This document shows positions 19,400-39,300 of a stretch of 64,000 bases of DNA, one piece after another. The position numbers were made by a program, and so were the translations under genes. The notes under the pieces were generated by a model that saw only the letters and a program-made list of their open reading frames with translations, was not told the origin of the DNA and made no database searches. Numbering within the stretch: position 1 is the stretch's first letter; every line of letters starts with the position of its first letter. The stretch is taken from assembly GCA_904063045.1 (NCBI GenBank), contig CAJFCJ010000006.1, forward strand, positions 1,651,601 through 1,715,600, written 5' to 3'. Origin of the DNA: Dimorphilus gyrociliatus. Its lineage: Eukaryota > Animalia > Annelida.

Positions 19400-20945
19400 C
19401 CCTTCTTTTCTTTTCTTTGCTTTCTTTTGCTTTCTTGTTTTTTTTTTATGTTATTTTCTTCGGATCCTTCGTTGCGCTATAGTTAAAGATTTCAATTTTC
19501 AATATAGTTTGATTTTTAATAGATATAGAATTGAAAACAGGGGAGGAAAGTTTAAGAGTCAACTGCGTGAAATTTTTAATATGCACTGTAGTCTAATATA
19601 TATATTTGTATATTATATATATTACAATATACAATATATATATTAATATATATATATATAATTAAAAAATGCTGTATAGCAACCTTCTGAGTTGGTAAGA
19701 ATTGAAAAAGGTGTTTGAAATCAATATATTAGAAAGAGTAACACAACAATTGTTGAATTTTATTAAAAGTATGAACAATTTTTACAGCATTCGAATAGAA
19801 GAAACTGAAATTTCGAAAGAATTTCGAGATATAAAGTAAGAACTGAATAAGCTAATTATTCTCACCTACAACGCGTTAGATTGAGCTAATTTGTAGAAAT
19901 TCCTTTTAAAATATGTTTTTATTATATTATTTATTTAGTTTATATATAGTTGGCGTCGTTGCCGCAAAAATCTGTAGCGCCGCCATTTATCGACATGGAA
20001 CAGTCGACGACGCACGAATGTTCAGCGTTTCTTAATGGAACGCAACCAAATTTTAATGAAGATCAGGTCTACATTTCAAAGAAACGGTTAAATGTTTTTT
20101 ATTGAATTTTTTAAAATTAATCTATTAAGTATGGTTAATTAATTAGTATTTTCCAAGTTTGTTCTATAGAAAATGTTCTTTTTCTTTTTTTGTTTGTTCT
20201 ACCATGAACTAGTCAAATATTATAAAAAATATCAAAAATTACATAAGTAATTAATAAAAAAGAAAATTTTATACGTTTTCTTATTCTTTCTTTCTTTTCC
20301 CGTTTATGCTCAACAGAACGGATCGTAAGAAGAGTAAATTTTGGTGGTTTAGAAGAACTTTTTTGGAGCGTTCTCTTATTCTGATTGTTCTATTCTTCCT
20401 TCTCGCTCTTATTGTTACGGTAATAGTCGCTGCTAGAAGATCATCAGGTAAACAAATTTTATATATACATATATATGTTTATATATAGATATGTATATAT
20501 TTAATAAAAATCAATAATAAATATATTTAAATGTATATTTTAGGGATAAATTATATATAGATGTATATTGTATTTAATTGCAGTATATATATTTAAATCC
20601 TTTTAGACATATATTGTACATATAAACTATATCTATACGGCATACAAATTTACATAAATTATGACATATTAGTATTTGTAAGTAAAATTATTATCACAGT
20701 ACCCTGGATACGATGAGGTGCTGTATAAAAACAGTAGAAATATCAATAGGCCTAACTGTTGATATATATGAAAGATATAATTTTTTTTGCAATTATTCAA
20801 AGATTATTACGTACATTACTTAAGATTTTTACAAAATAGTAAAAAGTTTACCGCCCAAACTAATTCTTGACTGGTTTTACGTTATATAACAAGAATCGTT
20901 CTACTTTTTTCTATAATCTCTCTTTTTCGCTTAGTCACTTTCCCT

Positions 20946-20981
<36 letters not shown>

Positions 20982-23900
20982 TCTCTGTCTGTTTGTCTAT
21001 TTATCTCTTTCTCTAGTATTTCCCTAAATTTTCATTTTTTATGTCATTTATCGGACCCAAAACATATTTTTTCATAAAGAGATAACTCATAAAAATGATT
21101 CGCAAAAATTTCTGTTTCAGATATAAATTACAGTAGGTGTGGCCTATTTTTCGTTCTTTATGAGATACAGTACAATATATACTAAATAATACTTTAGCAG
21201 TCAGAGTGTATAATTTACGTTGGTAAATGTATTTAGTAACAAAAAGGTACATTTCCATAACTTACATTGTTCAGTTTAGCACATACAGGAAATATATTGA
21301 TATTAGTAACTTGAGCTTTGTTTATTAGCATAATCTAGGAAAAGTTAAATGTCTTTTATTTTTTTTTGACATTTAATTTATCCTGTTTTTTCGTCATAGA
21401 AAAGAAAACAATGTATAGAGCATTGTAGTAATATTTATTCTCATACAGTTTTATACGTTAAACTATATAATTTTAACTTGTATCTGCTTTATTTTCTCTC
21501 TTTATAAACTGCATTAAGAAAGTAATCTTAGTTAGTATTTATTATTTATCTTTCTTTTCTGGAGTGAGTGATGCTAGAGTGTCATTTTTTATTAAAATAT
21601 ATATATATATATATATAACAAATATAAAAAGTGTATGAGGGATGTCTTTATCTTGAGTACTCGTTTTTATTATAGTCATGAATTTAGGCTGCCTTATTAT
21701 TAGACTATAGAAATATAAAGAATAAATTTGTTATACTAATTAATAGTCTAATCCCTATTAATTTACACATTTTCAAGGTAAAGTAAGAACATTGTATGTA
21801 TCTGTATTATATGTTTATGTACAGTATTATGTATGTATGATTACACTACATCGCTAGGTCTGTGTATATATATATATATTTATTTATAAAATATTATTAT
21901 AATTAAATATGCACACGAGTATACAATAAACCGTAAGCAATATACACTGGTAAGGTTATGAGTTCGTATACCTTACATAAAGGTGTAAGTCTTACTCTCT
22001 TCAAAAACACATGTTATATACGACATATTCTGTATGCATTTACTTCTTTCGTTACGCGATTGTTTGCCGCCTCTTTGTAGTTTTCTACCTATACGGATTA
22101 AAGCGTGCATTTGCTTTTTCCCATCCTTTTTTTTACCAATTCCTTAATTAGTCAATTTTCACAGGCTCAGATTACTTCGACCCAAGTGGAACTTGCTTAA
22201 AAGAAGAGTGTGTCAGCGCGGGTAATGTATCGTCTTAATTATTTTTTCTGTTCTTTCTCCACCTTCTCCCCCCTTCCTCTAACCCTTTTCTATTTTAGCA
22301 CGAATTAGTTGACCTTATTTTTTTTAACATAGCGGCGAGAATAATTGAAGCCAGAGATTTGACTGTCAATCCCTGCGACGACTTTTACGAATATGCTTGC
22401 GGTAATTGGAGGAAAAGGAATGTCGTACCGGAAGACCAGTCCAGTTATACGATGTTTACGGCGTTGAATGAACGCCTTGATAGGCTTTTGAAAGGCAAGT
22501 CAATTTCCTGTATCCTTTTTTTCCAGTTTACAATTCCGCATTGGTAGGTTGGCGTTGGCGTTTGAATGTCATAGAAAACTTTTAGTAAATAGTAAACCGC
22601 CTACGAACTTTTTCTAATGGTCCGAAATAGTTTTTTTTATATTTTTTTAACGGATTTTTTATGATAATTGCATACGAACTACTTGTAACCATGACCATCT
22701 TTTTGACAGAACTGATAGAAAACAACGAATATTTAAACACGCTAGCACCTATCCAAAAAGTACGAACACTGTATAATTCGTGTTTAAACACGACGAGAAT
22801 AGAAGATCGGGGTCTTCAACCTTTGACCGATCTCCTATCAGATCTCGGCGAATGGCCTGTGCTGAACCCTCACTGGACATCACAAGGGAAAAATTGGATT
22901 GATACTTTGGTTAAACTTCGTCTGTTTAATAACCAACCTCTATTCAAAACCTGGGTTCATGCCGACGAAAGAGAGCCGCTTAAGAACATTCTTCAGATTG
23001 ATCAAGCTGAGCTGGGTTTACCAACTAAAAACTTTTTCAAACAAAAATCGAAAACGGACGCCTATTTGAAATTTATGAAGGATGTTGCAAATCTGCTTCA
23101 AGCTTCGCGAGAGAGAGCGGACGAGCATCTCGGCGAAGTTCTTCGATTTGAAAAACGACTTTCGGGATTCTTGGCAGAGGAAGCATCGAGGCGTGACCTT
23201 AAAAAGATGTATAAGAAGATGACTTTGAAGGAATTGTCAAGAAATACGACGGTAAGCAATTTGTTAGGCTCTTTAGGCTTATTTTTAGCAGAGATCTACA
23301 TAGAAATTAATTATAGAATTATATGTTAATTATTTCCGCGAAATAAGCTAACTTTATATATTATTATTTCCCGTTGTAAGACTGTCTAATACGAGATTAT
23401 TATTATTATCCAAGTTTGCAAGGTATTCCCTTTGACAATACGTTTAATAAACGTCTTATAGGTAAGTATTATTATAAATGCTGCTCTATTCTTTTCAAGT
23501 TTCTTTAAAAGTAAGATGTATAATGGGAATCTAATTTTTTCTATTTCCATTACAGAACATAGACTGGATGAGATTCTTTACAAAAGTTTTTCAAAGTGTT
23601 AATATCAACATAACACAAGAGACCGAAGTTGTTGTATATAACTTAAAGTATCTAATCGATTTGGATTCTCTTATTGCGGAAGAAAAGGCCAAGTAAGTTA
23701 AAAGACGATTCAAAGAAAAATCCTTTTTTCCTCTTTTTTCTCTTTCTTTGCTTACTTTATTTAAAGAGATAAATAGATTTATATTTCTGGCAACGCCATC
23801 TGATGATTCTTACTGTTTAAGGAACTTTTGTAATTTATCATTAAAATGATTACACCATCAGAGGGCGCTTTAACTCAATCTATTTTATTCGATAAGCTCG

Positions 23901-26900
23901 TATACAGTTCCAATCGTATCATATTCGACTATTTGATATGGATAACGCTAACGAAGATTTATCCGACTCTACCTCAAAAATTCTTCGAAATCCGAAAACC
24001 TTATACGCAGGTAATTTCTTGACTGGAAAATATTAAAAGTTCTTTCCACTTCCCGTACAGTACCGATGCCGAACCATTATTTGAGACCACCATTCAAAAT
24101 TACGTAGTATGGTTAATGGTTAAGAATCGTTTAAAAAATATGGGTAAAAAATATTCCTCAGCCAGACTACCATTTCGCGAGGTATTCAGTAGGCCTATAA
24201 AATCAAATTAATGGGAGCTATATTTGATTCAGACGATTCAATTGATTATTCTTCATAATTTTTTAATTTACTCAGTAGTACCACTAATTTCACTAATTCA
24301 GGTATTAGATTGTAACCATGGGCCATACAAAATTTCACGCATGCCAAACATACTGTTTCGTTTTGTTTTTTTTTGCATATTTATCGAATATCGAACTTTT
24401 TCTTTCTCAGGTTATGTTTGGAACGACCCAAGAACAGGCTAGGTGGCGAGATTGCGTAACCGTAACAAACAACTTTTTGGGTTTCGCAACAAGTCGCCTA
24501 TTTGTTGATAGATATTTTGATGAATCGTCTAAAAAAGTTGCCCTGGAGATGATTGGAAAAGTTCGCGACTCTTTTAATGAGATCCTGAAAGAACTTGACT
24601 GGATGGACGATGAGGCCCGTAAAACTGCAAAAGAAAAAGCTGATGCTATTAGGGATAGTATCGGGTATCCGGAGTTTATTCAAAATAATACGGCTTTGAA
24701 TAATTATTATAAAAGTGTAAGCGTAAACCTCACAAATTGAGTTTATTTAATTAGAAAAAACCCATTCCAATAACATTATAGAGATAGGAGAGGAAATATC
24801 ACACTTATGATGTTTATTTACTTTATAGGTAACCGTCAATGAATCTAATTACTTTGAAAATTATCTGGAATTCCTAAAATTTACAACAAGAAGAGATCTA
24901 AGTAGATTAGATAAACCAGTTGATAAAACAATGTAAAACATCTTTTACTATATTTCAAATTTCTCTAATGATATTGTTTCCCTTCCCGTCATACAGCTGG
25001 CACACACCACCGACCACTGTAAACGCCTTCTATAATCCTATGTTTAATATGATAAGTTAGTTTCTTTTAAGAAAAAAATATTAAAATATCAAAGAGAAAC
25101 GGAAAAAAATTAACTTATGATGTCTTTTATACCTTTTCAATTTTCAGCTTTTCCTGCTGCCATACTGCAACCGCCTTTTTATAATGAAAACTTCCCAAAG
25201 TAAGTGAATTTAATTCTATAAATATTGGAAAAATGAAAATTCATCTTCTTATTTCCTTTTTATAATGCTTCTAACGCTTTTAATTAGCCTAACCGAGACG
25301 TTTCTGGCTTTTAGCACCGCAAATTATGAACAAAATATGCACTTCCTCTGTTTTTCCTACAAATATATATACACATATTCTATAGACTCTCTACTCAAAT
25401 TACAAATCAAATTATTTTCCTTTTACAACAAAAGAGTGAGAAAGAGATACTAAAAACATATTATATATACAGTATATATACATATATATATAAACATTAA
25501 TTGATTAATTAATTTTAAAAACAAAAACATACACAAAAAAGGTATTTAAATTACGGTGGAATCGGTTACGTAATCGGTCACGAAATATCTCACGGATTCG
25601 ACGATGTTGGTGAGTAGTAATTAGGTGTATATAAATTCTTGTACGGAAAATAACAAACAAAGGAAGGAACGCCCCTAAAAGGGCGTATCTTTTGCGATGC
25701 TTTGAAAAGCGAGATACGCCTCGAAGGTATAACAAGTTTGGAATAAAATTCGCGCTTCAGGTATATTAACTATGGAGGCATAGCAACCGTCATCGGTCAT
25801 GAAATCACTCATGGTTTCGACGATCGAGGTAAAAAGTTACAAGAGCATGAAGGGTTGATTTTAGTTTGATGCCCTGTAAACATGTCTGTAAACTACAAAT
25901 GTCAAGTACGAACTTTTACGTCTGTTTGTTTTTCAGTTAAGACGTCGACGTCACTAGTGTAGAATGTTGATCCCTAGACAACGCCATCTGACGATTACTT
26001 TAATTTTTTTGTTTTAGTTTGTTAAATCCCTGATTAGACCCCTGAATTTTGTATAATTAATAGACTGTAAAGTCGAACAGTTAGTTAAATCGTATCAGAG
26101 AAATAGAACATTAGTTAATATTCGTTTGTAATCCTCCTATGAAGGTTATTAAGGAGACTAATTAACTTGTGTACAAATTAAGGTCGGTTATTTGATAAGG
26201 ATGGAAAAATGAGAACATGGTGGTCTGACGAAGTTGTAAAAAAGTTCGAAAAAAGGGCTAGCTGCATAATAAACCAATACGGAAATTATCTGGTCGAAGA
26301 AGTCAATAAAACGGTAAATTTCTTCTAACCTTATCTAAGAAACCCAATTATTCTTGATTTAATGCTACAATTGAAAACTATTCCTAGAGAGAATCAAAGG
26401 AATAATTCAAATAAATATTCTTTTTCCAACAGATTAATGGAGTACAGACTCAAGGGGAAAACATTGCTGATAACGGCGGTTTAAAGCAGGCTTTTCGAGT
26501 AAAATTCACTATTAAAATAATTAATCCTCTTTTAGCTAAATTATGCACGAATAAATTAATCTAAATTTAATAGGCCTACAAGAAGCTTGTGAGGGAGGGT
26601 TTAAGAGAGCAAGTTCTACCAGGTATTGATTTGAACCCTGATCAATTATTCTTTTTAAATTTTGCTCAGGTAATTATAATTAAATGAGTGAGTGAAATAT
26701 CCCAAAAGAATTTTATCATTGATAAATATCTTCACAACAGGTCTGGTGTGGTTCTGAACGAAAAGAGTATTCTATGCAGACACTAACCAACGGAAAACAC
26801 AGTCCTGGAAGATTTAGGTTTGTATATGCGTATATTTTACTTTGTAATCATACTATATTTCATTATAGGGTTATTGGAACTCTACAAAACTCTGGAGACT

Positions 26901-26968
26901 TTGCGAAAGCATTTAAATGCGCCAACGGAAGTCCAATGAATCCTGAAAATAAATGTTCTTTATGGTGA
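18750..26968 (+). CDS. M13 neprilysin/endothelin-converting-enzyme-like type II membrane metallopeptidase with alternative first exons (18750-18802, 19335-19387, 19995-20086) and two mutually exclusive exon pairs (23908-24010 / 24061-24181 and 25542-25609 / 25761-25828)
   Basis: Transmembrane anchor (20317-20448), [40 protein letters not shown](S/T)[32 protein letters not shown] and C-terminal CSLW. Splice junctions were checked by hand and are phase-consistent. Confidence 0.95.
19071..19130. repeat. 25-bp minisatellite, 2.4 copies (gtatgtatactgtatacatgtgtgt)
   Basis: Direct read; it lies between the two duplicated first-exon modules. Confidence 0.9.
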
Positions 26969-31240: not shown

Positions 31241-32533
<1,293 letters not shown>

Positions 32534-33370: not shown

Positions 33371-36300
33371 ATGGATTATTTAATTTTATTGTTTATTTCA
33401 GTTGATATCTATTTAATTAGTTTAAGGTGTTCCGCTACTGAAAATAAGACTGGCTATACAGTATCAGTTAGTGTTAATTGGACGTTATCATCTGTATATT
33501 TTGAAAGGGAGAGGTATCGGTCGTATTACGTTTGGTGGGAAAAGATACTCAACGAGCCCTCTTTAATCGACAGCCTTGTTTTGGTGAATAATAATGGATT
33601 TAACTGTGAACAATTGTTCACAGTCGTCGCCGATGACACGTATATACTAGGGACGTGTCGTGGGCGAAAGTTATCTAACCTTAGTTGCCTGACCGGTAAC
33701 TTCATACCCGTAAGGAAATTGACACTGTTGGAGACTAAAGGGAAAGTTTCAAACCGATCGGAAACTTTACATCTTACTATAGTAATTAACGCAATAAACA
33801 ATAATAAAAGTAAAAAGATGAAAAGGGGGGCTAGCGAACAAAGTGGAAGAGAACGTAAACTTTTCTTTGAGAACAGTATAGAAAAGATAGATAGATATTG
33901 CACGAAAGCGGAACGGGATGAAATAGTCAGGGGAATTGATAGTAAGTGCTTTATCTATACGTATTCTTCTTTATTTATATTTAGCTAAACTCTAACAATT
34001 TATAAAGCAAACAGTAACCGCTCGAAGTGATATTCTTATAGCCAAAAATACATGTAAATAGTTAGAAGATAGTTACATTTCCTATTAAGACGATAACCTT
34101 GAGAATGAATAGTATTTTATGAGTAAAATACAGTATTTATATATAAGCTGAAACTGTGTATAGCAAAGAACGAGGTCATAATACATTAAACAACTATATA
34201 GTTATTCCTTATCACAAGATTAAATCACAATTTTATTACTAAAAATGCCTAATCCTGATTATTTTTATGATGGATTATGTCGTAAAACGGAAATCCTTAG
34301 GTAAATAGGAAGTGCATTGATATACACACATACAAAAATTGAGAATTAAGAATACTTTATTCGTTCATTTTACAGTAATTAAACGGTCTGAAAGGATGAT
34401 TTCATTTAATTGACATTCGAACGAATACCGTTGGAATGCCCGTAGCTAATTAATTTGAATACAATTAAACAGATTTAATACATCAATCATACTTAATGAT
34501 TAAATTCTAATTTTTAGGTATTGTTGATCAAGTGTCAGACAGTTTAATCATAATTAAATAAAGATACATGAACTTTTGGTTTTTATCTATTTTTTCATGT
34601 TTTTCTTTCTATCACTGTCCCTTTTATTATCATCAATTTTCCTTCTTATTACTTATAGATATATATATATATATATTTTTTAGATAAAATTGACATTATT
34701 TCGGGGAATGTGAAAGAGGAGCACAGACCGTCAAACACTACTCAAATACGTATCGATCTCCCAATCGAGAGAGAGATAACGGCTGTTGTAGTAAGGGGTC
34801 ACAGGCTATCGGAAATTGCCGTTGGCGTCGGCGCAGATATCGAAAAGAAGCTAATCCAAGATACAAAGAATAACATGAAAGAATGCGGCACTCTTACAAA
34901 TTATCTTTCAACAGAAGTTTGTATTCTATGCGAAACAAAACTCGAGTCGTCAAATATTGTGCTTCTCTCTTTTGTCGAGTCTCGAATGACTATTACCGAA
35001 CTATACGTAACGTCTAAATCGTATAACGTTCAAGATCACAGCAGGAGCTTAGCTAAAGGTGTAAACGTTATCAATTCCCAGAAATCAGCGGATACTTATA
35101 AAATGGTCGATAATGATTTGATGAATACCTGTGTCTATAATTGGGGACAACCATCTTACGTTATTATTGAATTATTAGATGTTTCTTATATAAACAGAGT
35201 AGTATTATTATCGAAATTTAATGGATTAAGAACATTAATTGTAGCTGCTGTACTTGGTAAACATTCTAATATAAATAAATATAAGAATGTAAACTATTGT
35301 TACTCCTACGTGAGACGATCACCGATAACGAGAATCGATAAATATTGCGCAAGAGTTCTAAAGACGAGGGGCGTAGCTATTATATCAGAAGAGAAACAAT
35401 TCCAATTATGTTCGGTTCAAGTGTATTTTGATAAAGAATTTGGAAAATTACAACCAGAACGAAAAATTCTGACTAATTACAGCTGGGCTGTTGAAAATGC
35501 ATTAAGGGATAGGGAAATATTAAATAACGATACAGAATTGGCATTTTTGACAAACGATGCCGCATTTAAATTGAAATTATTTAGAAAATCGAATTTGAAT
35601 GATGGCGATATTAGAACTTGTATACCAATTATAGCCACAAGACTTATACATCTTGACTCGATATTAATCAAGATATTTCTTAGAATAACTAGATCTTTCA
35701 AGTATTTTTTCATCTACGGTTATGACATATGCTCTCTAAAAGGAGGAAAAGTGTCAACTTCCTTTCGTATTGGTGCAATAACAACGATAAATCCAAAGAA
35801 TAAACTATCGGATTCGGTATTTTGTAGACCTAAATTTTCCGATTGCGATGATGAATTCAATATGAACGATGCTGATATGTAAGTTAATAAGATAAAATAG
35901 AAATACTTTTCCTCTCTTTCATATCAGGTTTTCATATCGTATCAGACTTGGGTCGTTTTCAATTAAGAGATACAGAGTTATCTGCCAAACTCCCGTGAGA
36001 GGCAACGTAGTTATTTTACAATTAAAACACCGTGCAAATGATTTTTCTATTTGCGAAGTTGGATCTTTCGTTGAGCAACCGGAAGTTGCAACTTTTGACA
36101 AGAATTCGTATCATTTTCAAAAATTATTAATTAAAGCTAAACATTTAACGCCTTTCGATGTTGACGATGTGATATCTTCGAGACTACTTGATACCGGAAG
36201 TAATCAGACTATGAATTTAAGGAAGACACTTATACCCAGAATCGGTTTAAAATCAGATTGGATGATAACAGACCCTAATTCATGTTTAAGCACTGTCATA

Positions 36301-39300
36301 CTAACAGATAAGCCTTCCTATGTGGGCGTTAGATTTACGAAAACGAATATTGGAGGAGTTAAATTATTGTCCGATGCAAACTCTTTGGGACCATTAAGGG
36401 TAGAAGGTGGAAACGTTCCTAAAACAGCGTTTTATAGGGGACCGGCAGACAATTCAAATACTGAAATATGCTTCTATCTATATATAGATGAAAGGAAGGC
36501 TGCTTCTCGTTATAGCGTCGTAGATAGGAGATGCTATAGGTCTATAAAAAGAGCTACTACACTCTACGTAATATCATCTATAGGTTACGATTTACGTGTA
36601 TGCAAAATTTTTATATACGAGCAGAAAACTTTGGCACCTGATAAGAAAAAGGTGGGAGGTTACGGTTTATCGCTCGGAAGGAACGAAACATACTACATCA
36701 ATAATGGACCTAATTTGAATACTTCTTTAAAAAACTATGAAAGATTTAGACAATCGGATAGCATCTCTAAAGGTCTTCTAGCCCGTATTGAAAATTACAA
36801 TTATCAATCTTATTATAATTCACGTATTACCAATTCGCCAAAAGTAACATTTTCCTTTGGTCCAAATGTCACGGCTGTTTCCCTTGACCTTAAACGAGTT
36901 TTTCGCTTAATAAATGTTTCTCTTGGTGTTGAAACCCCCTTAGAACCAAATCGAACATTATACATATGGTACGACTACGCCTTACAACCGGAAATCTTTA
37001 CTTTTTCTTCAAAAGGTCCCAATTGTTGGTCTAGAAGAACTATTGGTAGAGGATTTTTTATTCTAACTTGTACGTTATTTAAAGTAGCAGGTAGATTCAT
37101 AAGAGTAGAACTTGAACCAAGCAGTAGGAAGCATACGATAAAACTATGGAAATTGGACGCAGTTTCAGACCAAATAGGTGGCATTTGCTATCAATTAGAA
37201 AGAGTTTATTCTCAAGTTTTAGAAGAGATGGGAAATCCAACAGTAGCCCTTACGCTAAATATCTGCAAATACCGATGTTGGTCTATTACGAACTGCAATT
37301 ATTTTAAATACCATAATTCAATATGTAATTTATATAAGAAAAAGTCCAAAGGAACGATTGGTACAGCAATTAAATCGGCCTATAGAAAAAAGAATTGCTC
37401 TCAGAACGAGTATAAAGCGTCTTATGATCAATTACCCATAACTGAAAGAGAGAAGGCTATGGAAGGTTATAGAATCCTCCTGGCGTCAACAAATACAGAT
37501 GGTTTTACAAAATTATCTGCAGTTTTTGAATCTAGGTCCGCTATTGATTCAAATTTTGGAGAATTCAGCTGCACGAATACAAGAAGGTCATCTTGGATAT
37601 CCATAAAATTAAGGGAAAGAAATAAATTGGGTAGAATTCGGATAAGATCAGTAGGAGGCAGCTTAAGTCATTTGAATACTGCAGTTTTCTCTGATGATTC
37701 TATTCTTAGATTAAGTTCTTTTGATAAGTTCTTATCGAATGAGCTTGAACATTGCTATACTCTTTCTGAGAGCCTTGATGAAGCCATATATCAATATGAG
37801 GATAGGTGCTGGAGAGATATTGAAGGGGAGTATATACTTATTTATACTGAGATCCTTCCCTCGCTACACGTTTGCGAAGTAAAGGCCTATTCTGTTAATA
37901 TGCCTGATCCCTGTTACGATCACAAATGTCCCATGGATTTGTCTAAATGTGTTAAGTTTAGAAGCCACTATCATTGTCAATGTTACGATAGTAACCTTAT
38001 ATTCGGTAATTTGTGCCAAATGAGAGCTTCCGGTAAATTTTTACTGAATTCTAATGTATCAATTATTGATTGGCGAAGATCTAGACATCATTATTTAGTC
38101 GATCTTGCTAAAAAAAAGAGATCTTTTATTTACGGCTCTTACGATCAACAACCTATTTATTTAGGATTAAACCTGACGGACGGAGACTTAAGGACTTGTG
38201 TAAATATGGATGATCGTTTCTTTGTATCTGTCTACCTTGAGACGCTATTTCCCGTTGGTAGAATAATTTTAGGGGGAAAGAATATGAATAAGACGTCGGG
38301 GAATGCCTTGATAATTGAGGTCCGTACAAGTCGATCATATTTCCAATTTTCATCTTTAATCGAGTTCGAAAGAGAACGATCAAAGCGAACAACTCTTTGC
38401 TACGAAGGTTTCTATTCGACACCTTCAACACCTTTTATAAACGCAACGTGCCGTACATATGATAAAGGTAGGAAGAGCGAAGTTCAAACTCCACAAAATG
38501 CCCGATTAATCTATGTTTATGTTGGAGGTGTGACTTCTGTTTTTGAATTATGCGAAATAGAAGTTTACAAATTGCCTGAGAGAAGACAGAGTTGCCTGAG
38601 AACGATTTGGTCATCAAAACCAGATGATCAATTCGATAAAAGTCATCTTATTGAGAGGAAAGTTTTAAAGAACAAGGACGATTGTGAACTTCTCTGCAGG
38701 AGCTTAAGTAATTGTAAAGGCGGCGAATTCGGAGGGTCAGCATGTCTATTATTCGATTACCTAGTATTCGATAGATCTTTACGAAGGAGGAGTTCGGCAG
38801 GTGGAGTAGTGCACTTGTTCGAATTGGTCAATTGTAATATAACATCCATAGAAAATTACGGAAAAGGACCAAAAAGTATTACAAAGTGGGTTTCAGCCAC
38901 CACTAGTAGTCCTAAATCGGAAACCGGTAAGGAGATTGAGGGATTGAAGGCTTCAGGAAAAATAAGTAACATGTGTACTTGGATAGACTGTAGTCAGTCA
39001 CAGACAGATCGTTATTGCTATTGGCTCGTTAATCTAGGCACGAAGAAGTATATCTACGCCGTAAATATAAAAAGCGATATAAATATCCTTAGTAACCTGG
39101 CGGTAGAAACTATTAAAGAGGGGGATCAGGAGAAGGACTTTGACGCAATCTTCAGTAGCACTGCCCATAACCGAACGGATTTAGATAAGAAGCTTTGTTA
39201 TCATTATACAGGAGTATTGACTAAAGAGGTAACTACGATATTAATAATAAGTTAAATCTTAATGTTAATAATCCTTTGTTGATATAAAAGATACGTGGTT

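Follow-up and report, generated by a model that had tools for sequence, protein, structure and literature searches.

Two alternative exons, each encoding the zinc-binding site, in a predicted M13 peptidase gene of the annelid Dimorphilus gyrociliatus

The stretch of Dimorphilus gyrociliatus DNA considered here, 64,000 nucleotides (nt) of contig CAJFCJ010000006.1 (positions 1,651,601 to 1,715,600 of the forward strand; hereafter the 64-kb window, in which all positions are counted), contains a single gene predicted to encode a peptidase of family M13, the neprilysin (NEP)/ECE-like family. The Pfam domains Peptidase_M13_N (PF05649; profile positions 1-381, E down to 4e-39) and Peptidase_M13 (PF01431) match its exons, ECE-1 and neprilysin are its sequence matches in the PDB, and the spliced translation holds VNAFY, HExxH, the third-ligand Glu of ENxADxGG and a C-terminal CxxW (CSLW followed by the stop codon). 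As such, the gene can be assigned to peptidase family M13 and its predicted catalytic set appears to be intact. The closest database homologue is 46% identical, a level at which NEP versus ECE orthology is not assigned. Within this gene, two adjoining exons, here termed C1 and C2, each encode the segment NYGGIxxVIGHExxHGFDD on the + strand. The core of the gene, the two exons and the constitutive exons that flank them are as follows:

22312-26968, + strand: gene core (M13, neprilysin/ECE-like), extending from the exon that encodes PCDDFY as far as the stop codon and delineated by Pfam, tblastn and RNA joints; the start of the first exon is approximate
25148-25199, + strand: constitutive upstream exon (up), ending 2 nt into a codon; joints 25055>25148 and 25199>25761 in RNA contigs
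25542-25609, + strand: exon C1, 68 nt, bounded as aaaaag/G...G/gtgagt; read directly and spliced in silico
25761-25828, + strand: exon C2, 68 nt, bounded as cttcag/G...G/gtaaaa; the form seen spliced in RNA
26183-26313, + strand: constitutive downstream exon (dn), with its acceptor AG at 26181-26182

C1 and C2 are separated by an intron of 151 nt, and both are entered after a phase-2 intron and left into a phase-1 intron, each ending 1 nt into a codon. The two are identical at 48 of 68 nt and at 17 of the 22 encoded amino acids (aa), and they are the sole HExxH-coding segments of this kind in the window, with every other exon of the gene outside its alternative pairs being present once. When splicing was performed in silico, inclusion of C1 alone or of C2 alone left the frame open to the TGA at 26966-26968, and inclusion of both or of neither led to a premature stop within a few codons. 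Because C1 and C2 both align with homologues over one and the same set of protein positions (tblastn E values of 3e-9 and 4e-7, respectively), the pairing of the two exons lies far beyond chance. Sequence reading and in silico splicing thus confirmed what a first-pass annotation of this DNA had described, namely, two 68-nt exons flanked by AG and GT and sharing their phases, an intact HExxH plus GFDD in each (HEISHGFDD in C1 and HEITHGFDD in C2) and a frame that is broken by double inclusion or skipping. In placing the downstream junction partner at 26182, that annotation had pointed to an exon that is indeed present but that starts at 26183, position 26182 being part of the acceptor.

Splicing of the pair was considered using RNA data in the form of assembled Logan contigs, from which rare variants are dropped. 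Four runs were aligned, with a threshold of at least 90% likeness and with positions 25462-25541 masked as a repeat. X1 and X2, two of these runs, represent a close relative of the source species, referred to here as the sister taxon (36 of the 40 listed exon differences are synonymous, with a third-position divergence of about 15%). Contigs of both X1 and X2 contain the joints 25199>25761 and 25826(+2)>26181(+2), i.e., 25828>26183. C2 is spliced as predicted.

Comparison of C1 with C2 by the Nei-Gojobori method yielded a pS of 0.86, which is saturated, and a pN of 0.146. When 20 random nucleotide changes were scattered over C2, five or fewer amino acid changes without a stop were obtained in none of 20,000 trials. 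Given the saturated pS, the low pN and the outcome of this simulation, long purifying selection on both copies is indicated. C1 and C2 are accordingly old copies, each long selected as coding sequence since the duplication, and C1 is no decayed duplicate. C1 is moreover the more consensus-like of the two, retaining the Gly found at NEP position 578 in 66 of 66 motif-bearing homologues, a position at which the expressed C2 has Ala, and the lone exon of one homologous locus (L003) shares 95% protein identity with C1. In the sister taxon, the last 18 nt of C1 differ at three positions, all of them synonymous third positions (in His, Phe and Asp codons), after which comes a GTAAGT donor. The first-pass annotation had raised the prospect of C1 being degraded in close relatives; at this end of the sister-taxon exon, no decay was seen.

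A pair of the C1/C2 type was also sought at homologous loci from five other animal genomes (L001, L002, L003, L007 and L008). None was found at these loci, each of which holds one 68-nt exon of the same phases. Because the five loci hold a single exon, the duplication appears to be lineage-restricted, yet it would predate the divergence of the sister taxon, where the C1-intron-C2 layout is likewise present (X2 contig 11).

The alignment to human NEP is ungapped across the exon, such that human NEP numbering can be used for the residues at which the two encoded segments differ:

NEP position 572: Leu in C1, Ile in C2
NEP position 578: Gly in C1, Ala in C2
NEP position 579: Tyr in C1, Thr in C2
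NEP position 586: Ser in C1, Thr in C2
NEP position 592: Val in C1, Arg in C2

The ungapped alignment bears out the earlier assignment of Tyr (C1) and Thr (C2) as equivalents of Met579. Likewise, the claim that Met579 and Val580 line the S1' pocket agrees with the listing of both residues within the hydrophobic S1' subsite of human NEP (PMC11997989). Across homologues, position 579 is the most variable of the segment, being occupied by 12 residue types that include Tyr and Thr, and position 578 never varies. Besides the Tyr/Thr swap that had been named earlier, C2 therefore also replaces an invariant Gly. Because the two exons differ at an S1' residue that is the most variable of the segment across homologues, an altered P1' preference or inhibitor sensitivity between the isoforms is plausible.

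The introns on either side of C1 contain stretches that could be compared with those of the sister taxon:

25200-25367, + strand: conserved intron block upstream of C1, seen in unspliced sister-taxon RNA contigs
25621-25760, + strand: conserved stretch of the intron between C1 and C2, still present in RNA contigs from three runs

In the region upstream of C1, X1 differs from the window at 6 of 194 nt (25174-25367) and X2 at 2 of 129 nt (25239-25367). In the region between C1 and C2, X2 differs at 1 of 170 nt (25621-25790) and X1 at 0 of 131 nt (25659-25790). Over the blocks 25239-25367 and 25621-25760 together, this corresponds to 3 differences in 269 nt, or about 1%, as compared to 55 in 957 nt of exon (Fisher p 0.0006) and to the third-position divergence given above; the comparison covers only pieces that are at least 90% alike, and other introns may hold similar blocks. 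Judged from these counts, the blocks flanking C1 are far more conserved than neutral sequence, and it is possible that they act as splicing control elements. Regulated alternative exons are typically recognized by such strong conservation of the flanking intron. Because the flanking intron stretches in unspliced contigs keep a third to half of exon depth, slow splicing of the C cluster is suggested. The C1-C2 intron also contains a G+C-rich hairpin-forming sequence at 25669-25722, and C1 lies between AT-rich inverted repeats that might be due to chance. A search of the introns against Rfam for hosted small RNA returned no match above noise. As to how exclusivity would be enforced, steric hindrance is unlikely because the intron is 151 nt long and both donors are of the GT type, and nonsense-mediated decay, as deduced from the frame shift, would be the simplest safeguard.

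The explanation favored here, and one considered fairly probable, is that C1 and C2 arose by tandem duplication and are spliced in a mutually exclusive manner, yielding two isoenzymes, the C2 form common and the C1 form minor, with the swap in the S1' pocket retuning the enzyme. Mutually exclusive splicing with C2 dominant is, as such, very probable. In this mechanism, each exon would encode a strand-plus-helix segment that contributes both zinc histidines and the catalytic Glu and that walls the S1' pocket on one side. Inclusion of exactly one 68-nt exon would keep the frame, and transcripts containing both or neither would be lost, presumably through nonsense-mediated decay. The isoenzymes would carry Gly578/Tyr579/Ser586/Val592 in the case of C1 and Ala578/Thr579/Thr586/Arg592 in the case of C2, with C2 apparently providing the common form in the sampled RNA and C1 a minor or condition-specific one. 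The choice between them would probably be governed by the two conserved intron blocks flanking C1, and reciprocal splice sites would probably contribute, C1 combining a weak acceptor with a strong donor and C2 a good acceptor with a weak donor. Finally, Tyr or Thr at position 579, together with Gly or Ala at position 578, would most likely change P1' preference or inhibitor sensitivity. The mutually exclusive pair put forward in the first-pass annotation is thus upheld by frame logic, selection, splice sites and conserved introns, and use of C2 is shown by its joints, with that part of the proposal that concerns the use of C1 standing less firmly.

A somewhat unlikely alternative, although the strongest of those considered, is that both exons are used but that the swap, rather than retuning substrate specificity, alters a property such as stability, pH optimum, inhibitor sensitivity or partner binding, or else chiefly adjusts expression level by way of unproductive products of double inclusion or skipping. 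Four of the five differences (positions 572, 578, 586 and 592) indeed involve residues that are not known to belong to the pocket, the 151-nt intron is long enough to be spliced, such that out-of-frame products are possible, and intron retention in the C cluster is conspicuous. The fifth difference, however, concerns an S1' residue, 579, whose position varies most across homologues, and the exchange of Tyr for Thr represents a large change in side-chain volume. The preferred explanation, i.e., exclusive splicing that retunes specificity, builds on this difference.

It is more improbable still that the duplicate exon C1 has ceased to be spliced productively, or is so only very rarely, in which case only the C2 enzyme would be made and C1 RNA would correspond to precursor or noise. 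It is here that the observations weighing against the preferred explanation are best gathered. In the contigs of the four RNA runs, neither up>C1 nor C1>dn is listed as a clean joint, the listed joints of the pair being those of C2 only. Two of the three C1 words sampled are found in runs X2, X3, X4 and X12, with X1 containing no C1 words. X2 contig 11 and X4 contig 14 run continuously from C1 through the intron into C2 (25542-25791 in X4), and because the C1 contigs do so, the C1 words may derive from unspliced RNA. The acceptor of C1 is A-rich and without a pyrimidine tract, its GTGAGT donor being strong. A string in which the end of C1 meets the start of dn was found, but in a strand-switched chimeric contig, with 7 letters of dn visible. 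Lastly, when the C1-C2 intron was considered for a stable fold, the result was no better than that of shuffled sequences (z -1.19).

By contrast, the saturated synonymous divergence between C1 and C2, accompanied by just five amino acid changes, argues for long coding selection on C1, which has moreover retained the invariant Gly578 and all catalytic residues. The end of sister-taxon C1 shows synonymous changes only and a kept donor, and X2 contains not only the string joining the end of C1 to the start of dn but also a contig break that matches it. A very recent loss of C1 use could still have occurred. The contigs themselves neither show nor exclude use of C1 in the sister taxon, where likeness at the 3' end of C1 is under 90% and thus below the alignment threshold.

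The string in question lies within 33 loose letters that precede position 25148 in X2. When these are read as the reverse complement, ...GGATTTGATGATGTTG is followed directly by GTCGGTT, corresponding to the end of C1 and the start of dn. In X2 contig 11, the same C1 end, GGATTTGATGATGTTG, is followed by GTAAGTAAT, corresponding to intron. In the chimera, the antisense C1-end and dn-start are joined to the sense up exon at 25148 with an ATGA microhomology, and the contig is probably a cDNA fold-back artefact. The junction within it nevertheless requires a molecule with C1 joined to dn. As for the matching contig break, the X2 contig containing dn starts at 26182, where the merging paths share only a final G, as do C1 (..GTTG) and C2 (..CGAG). 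The corresponding contig in X1, the run without C1 words, starts at 26181, with a shared suffix of AG, as is the case for C2 and the unspliced intron. Productive splicing of C1 in the sister taxon is considered likely. Among the junctions that the first-pass annotation had put forward, 25199>25761 and that between C2 and dn are therefore seen, a clean 25199>25542 is not, and the junction between C1 and dn appears only as the string in the chimeric contig.

That C1 and C2 belong to two overlapping or adjacent genes, or reflect an assembly artefact involving a collapsed or duplicated segment, is scarcely credible, given that the window holds one M13 gene with its other exons present once, that 20 of 68 nt distinguish the copies, that the X4 contig, from an independent run (RNA or DNA), spans C1, the intron and C2, and that X2 contig 11 presents the same layout in the sister taxon.

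Other readings of the contigs were considered and rejected. The start of an X4 contig at 25542 was not taken as an up>C1 splice, as the masking of 25462-25541 cuts pieces at that point. An apparent Ser to Tyr change within the HExxH of sister-taxon C1, at the X2 loose end, was set aside because its letters match those that close the preceding exon (ATGATAA) where the chimera breaks. The 26-letter side of the X1 contig joining up to C2 was not taken as a C1 branch, as a clipped first letter explains it, as in X1 contig 4.

A 41-aa peptide spanning the C1 junction found no candidate in a collection of 5.8 billion proteins, and the best match among 1.84 billion representative proteins was 42-43% identical. 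The source species and the sister taxon are thus absent from these collections, which cannot supply C1 transcripts. In a scan of JGI metagenome contigs for the spliced junction between the up exon and GTAT, two matches were obtained, both unrelated and due to chance.

Mutually exclusive exons are known from Drosophila Mhc, 14-3-3zeta and Dscam1 and from exons 9/10 of human PKM. Like the exons of such clusters, C1 and C2 adjoin, are homologous, of equal length and of the same phases, and have conserved flanking intron; their length, as in those clusters, is not a multiple of three, with double inclusion or skipping breaking the frame. Unlike those clusters, C1 and C2 exchange the HExxH zinc site of an M13 peptidase along with a wall of its pocket; no docking/selector RNA structure came to light, and their exclusivity is a probable one. 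Alternative exons encoding the reactive-centre loop are found in insect serpins, such as Manduca serpin-1 and Drosophila Spn42Da. As in those proteins, one exon setting target specificity would be swapped and the remaining fold kept constant, although the serpins are inhibitors in which the last coding exon exists in many copies, whereas C1 and C2 are an internal pair in a catalytic core.

Within its own family, the gene resembles human neprilysin (MME) and ECE-1 (PDB 1dmt and 3dwb) in possessing both Pfam domains, HExxH, GENIADNGG, the Asn of VNAFY and CxxW, and differs from the five single-copy homologue loci in that the catalytic exon is doubled. The known vertebrate NEP and ECE isoforms arise from alternative promoters or N-termini, or from a soluble-form exon, and not from the catalytic exon. 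Tandem-duplicated mutually exclusive exons have been predicted on the basis of exon length, phase and homology (Pillmann et al. 2011, PMC3228551; Hatje et al. 2017, PMC5740500). A search of the literature library for mutually exclusive exons together with neprilysin, M13/ECE, metalloprotease or HExxH returned nothing relevant, and MME, MMEL1, ECE1, ECE2, ECEL1 and PHEX are not listed in the supplements of a human mutually-exclusive-exon catalogue. Within the library searched, this agrees with the earlier statement that no M13 peptidase that switches its catalytic exon has been described. C1/C2 is thus a new instance of a well-known splicing mechanism, in a family for which no description was found in the literature searched.

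The remainder of the gene model, including a second pair of alternative exons (B1 and B2), comprises the following:

22312?-22494 (GC donor), 22710-23251 and 23556-23692, + strand: exons 1-3 of the model, from tblastn with homologues and RNA joints
23908-24010, + strand: exon B1, 103 nt, helical domain; joints 23692>23908 and 24007(+3)>24408(+3) in X1 and X2
24061-24181, + strand: exon B2, 121 nt, alternative to B1; joints 23692>24067 and 24179(+2)>24409(+2) in X1
24411-24716, 24829-24932 and 24997-25055, + strand: exons between the B pair and the up exon, from tblastn and RNA joints
26433-26498, + strand: GENIADNGG exon, encoding Glu as third ligand of zinc along with Asp from the M13 ExxxD motif, from translation, Pfam and joints 26312>26432 and 26498>26574
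26574-26669, 26741-26817 and 26869-26968, + strand: last exons, from tblastn and RNA joints

RNA contigs of the sister taxon confirm nearly all of the remaining introns of this model. The intron at 22495-22709, following the PCDDFY exon, has a GC donor (AAAG/gcaagt) and an AG acceptor, and was taken as a GC-AG intron because the frame closes only in this manner. Transmembrane and N-terminal exons lie further upstream, at about 18.6-20.5 kb; a hydrophobic stretch of 20 residues, a candidate for the type II membrane anchor typical of the family, is found in an open segment at 20258-20485, outside the RNA-checked exon model. In a more distant organism, contig 8 of run X12 matches 20-22 nt on each side of the region 26457-26818, with 186 other letters in between, and probably represents a paralogue or an orthologue too diverged to align.

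The lengths of B1 and B2 both leave a remainder of one upon division by three, and all four combinations of a B exon with a C exon were open when spliced in silico, giving 673 or 679 aa. RNA contigs of X1 include both 23692>B1>24411 and 23692>B2>24411, the joint 23692>24067 leaving 6 diverged letters in between, and those of X2 include B1 only. X1 and X2 apparently represent one taxon, presenting the same differences from the window, with X1 having both B1 and B2 but no C1 words and X2 having B1 only together with C1 words. This isoform difference could reflect regulation by tissue or stage, or sampling.

Adjoining the peptidase gene is a single uninterrupted frame at 31313-32530 that encodes a SMAD1/5-like protein of 406 aa, for which the ESM Atlas holds an identical entry. 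Downstream of the SMAD gene, + strand frames of 407 and 1119 aa at 34659-39252 form part of a large receptor-like gene.

M13 peptidases end peptide signals, including those of enkephalins, tachykinins and natriuretic peptides in vertebrates and of many invertebrate neuropeptides; what they cleave and which drugs inhibit them depend chiefly on the S1' pocket. Were C1 and C2 to be used as proposed, this pocket would be lined by Tyr (C1) or by Thr and Ala (C2). If the pocket is exchanged by splicing, the turnover of peptide signals could be adjusted to the tissue or the stage with no need for a duplicated gene. The pair would in that case also amount to a natural two-state test of the way in which residues 578 and 579 set M13 specificity, and the cluster, with its two 68-nt exons, 151-nt intron and near-invariant flanking blocks, is small enough to suit minigene work. 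More tentatively, and with some doubt, a single gene may retune its active site through regulated choice of its catalytic exon, the intron blocks serving as the switch, and in combination with the B pair may thereby provide, from one locus, several neuropeptide-degrading specificities of the sort that other animals draw from separate M13 paralogues.

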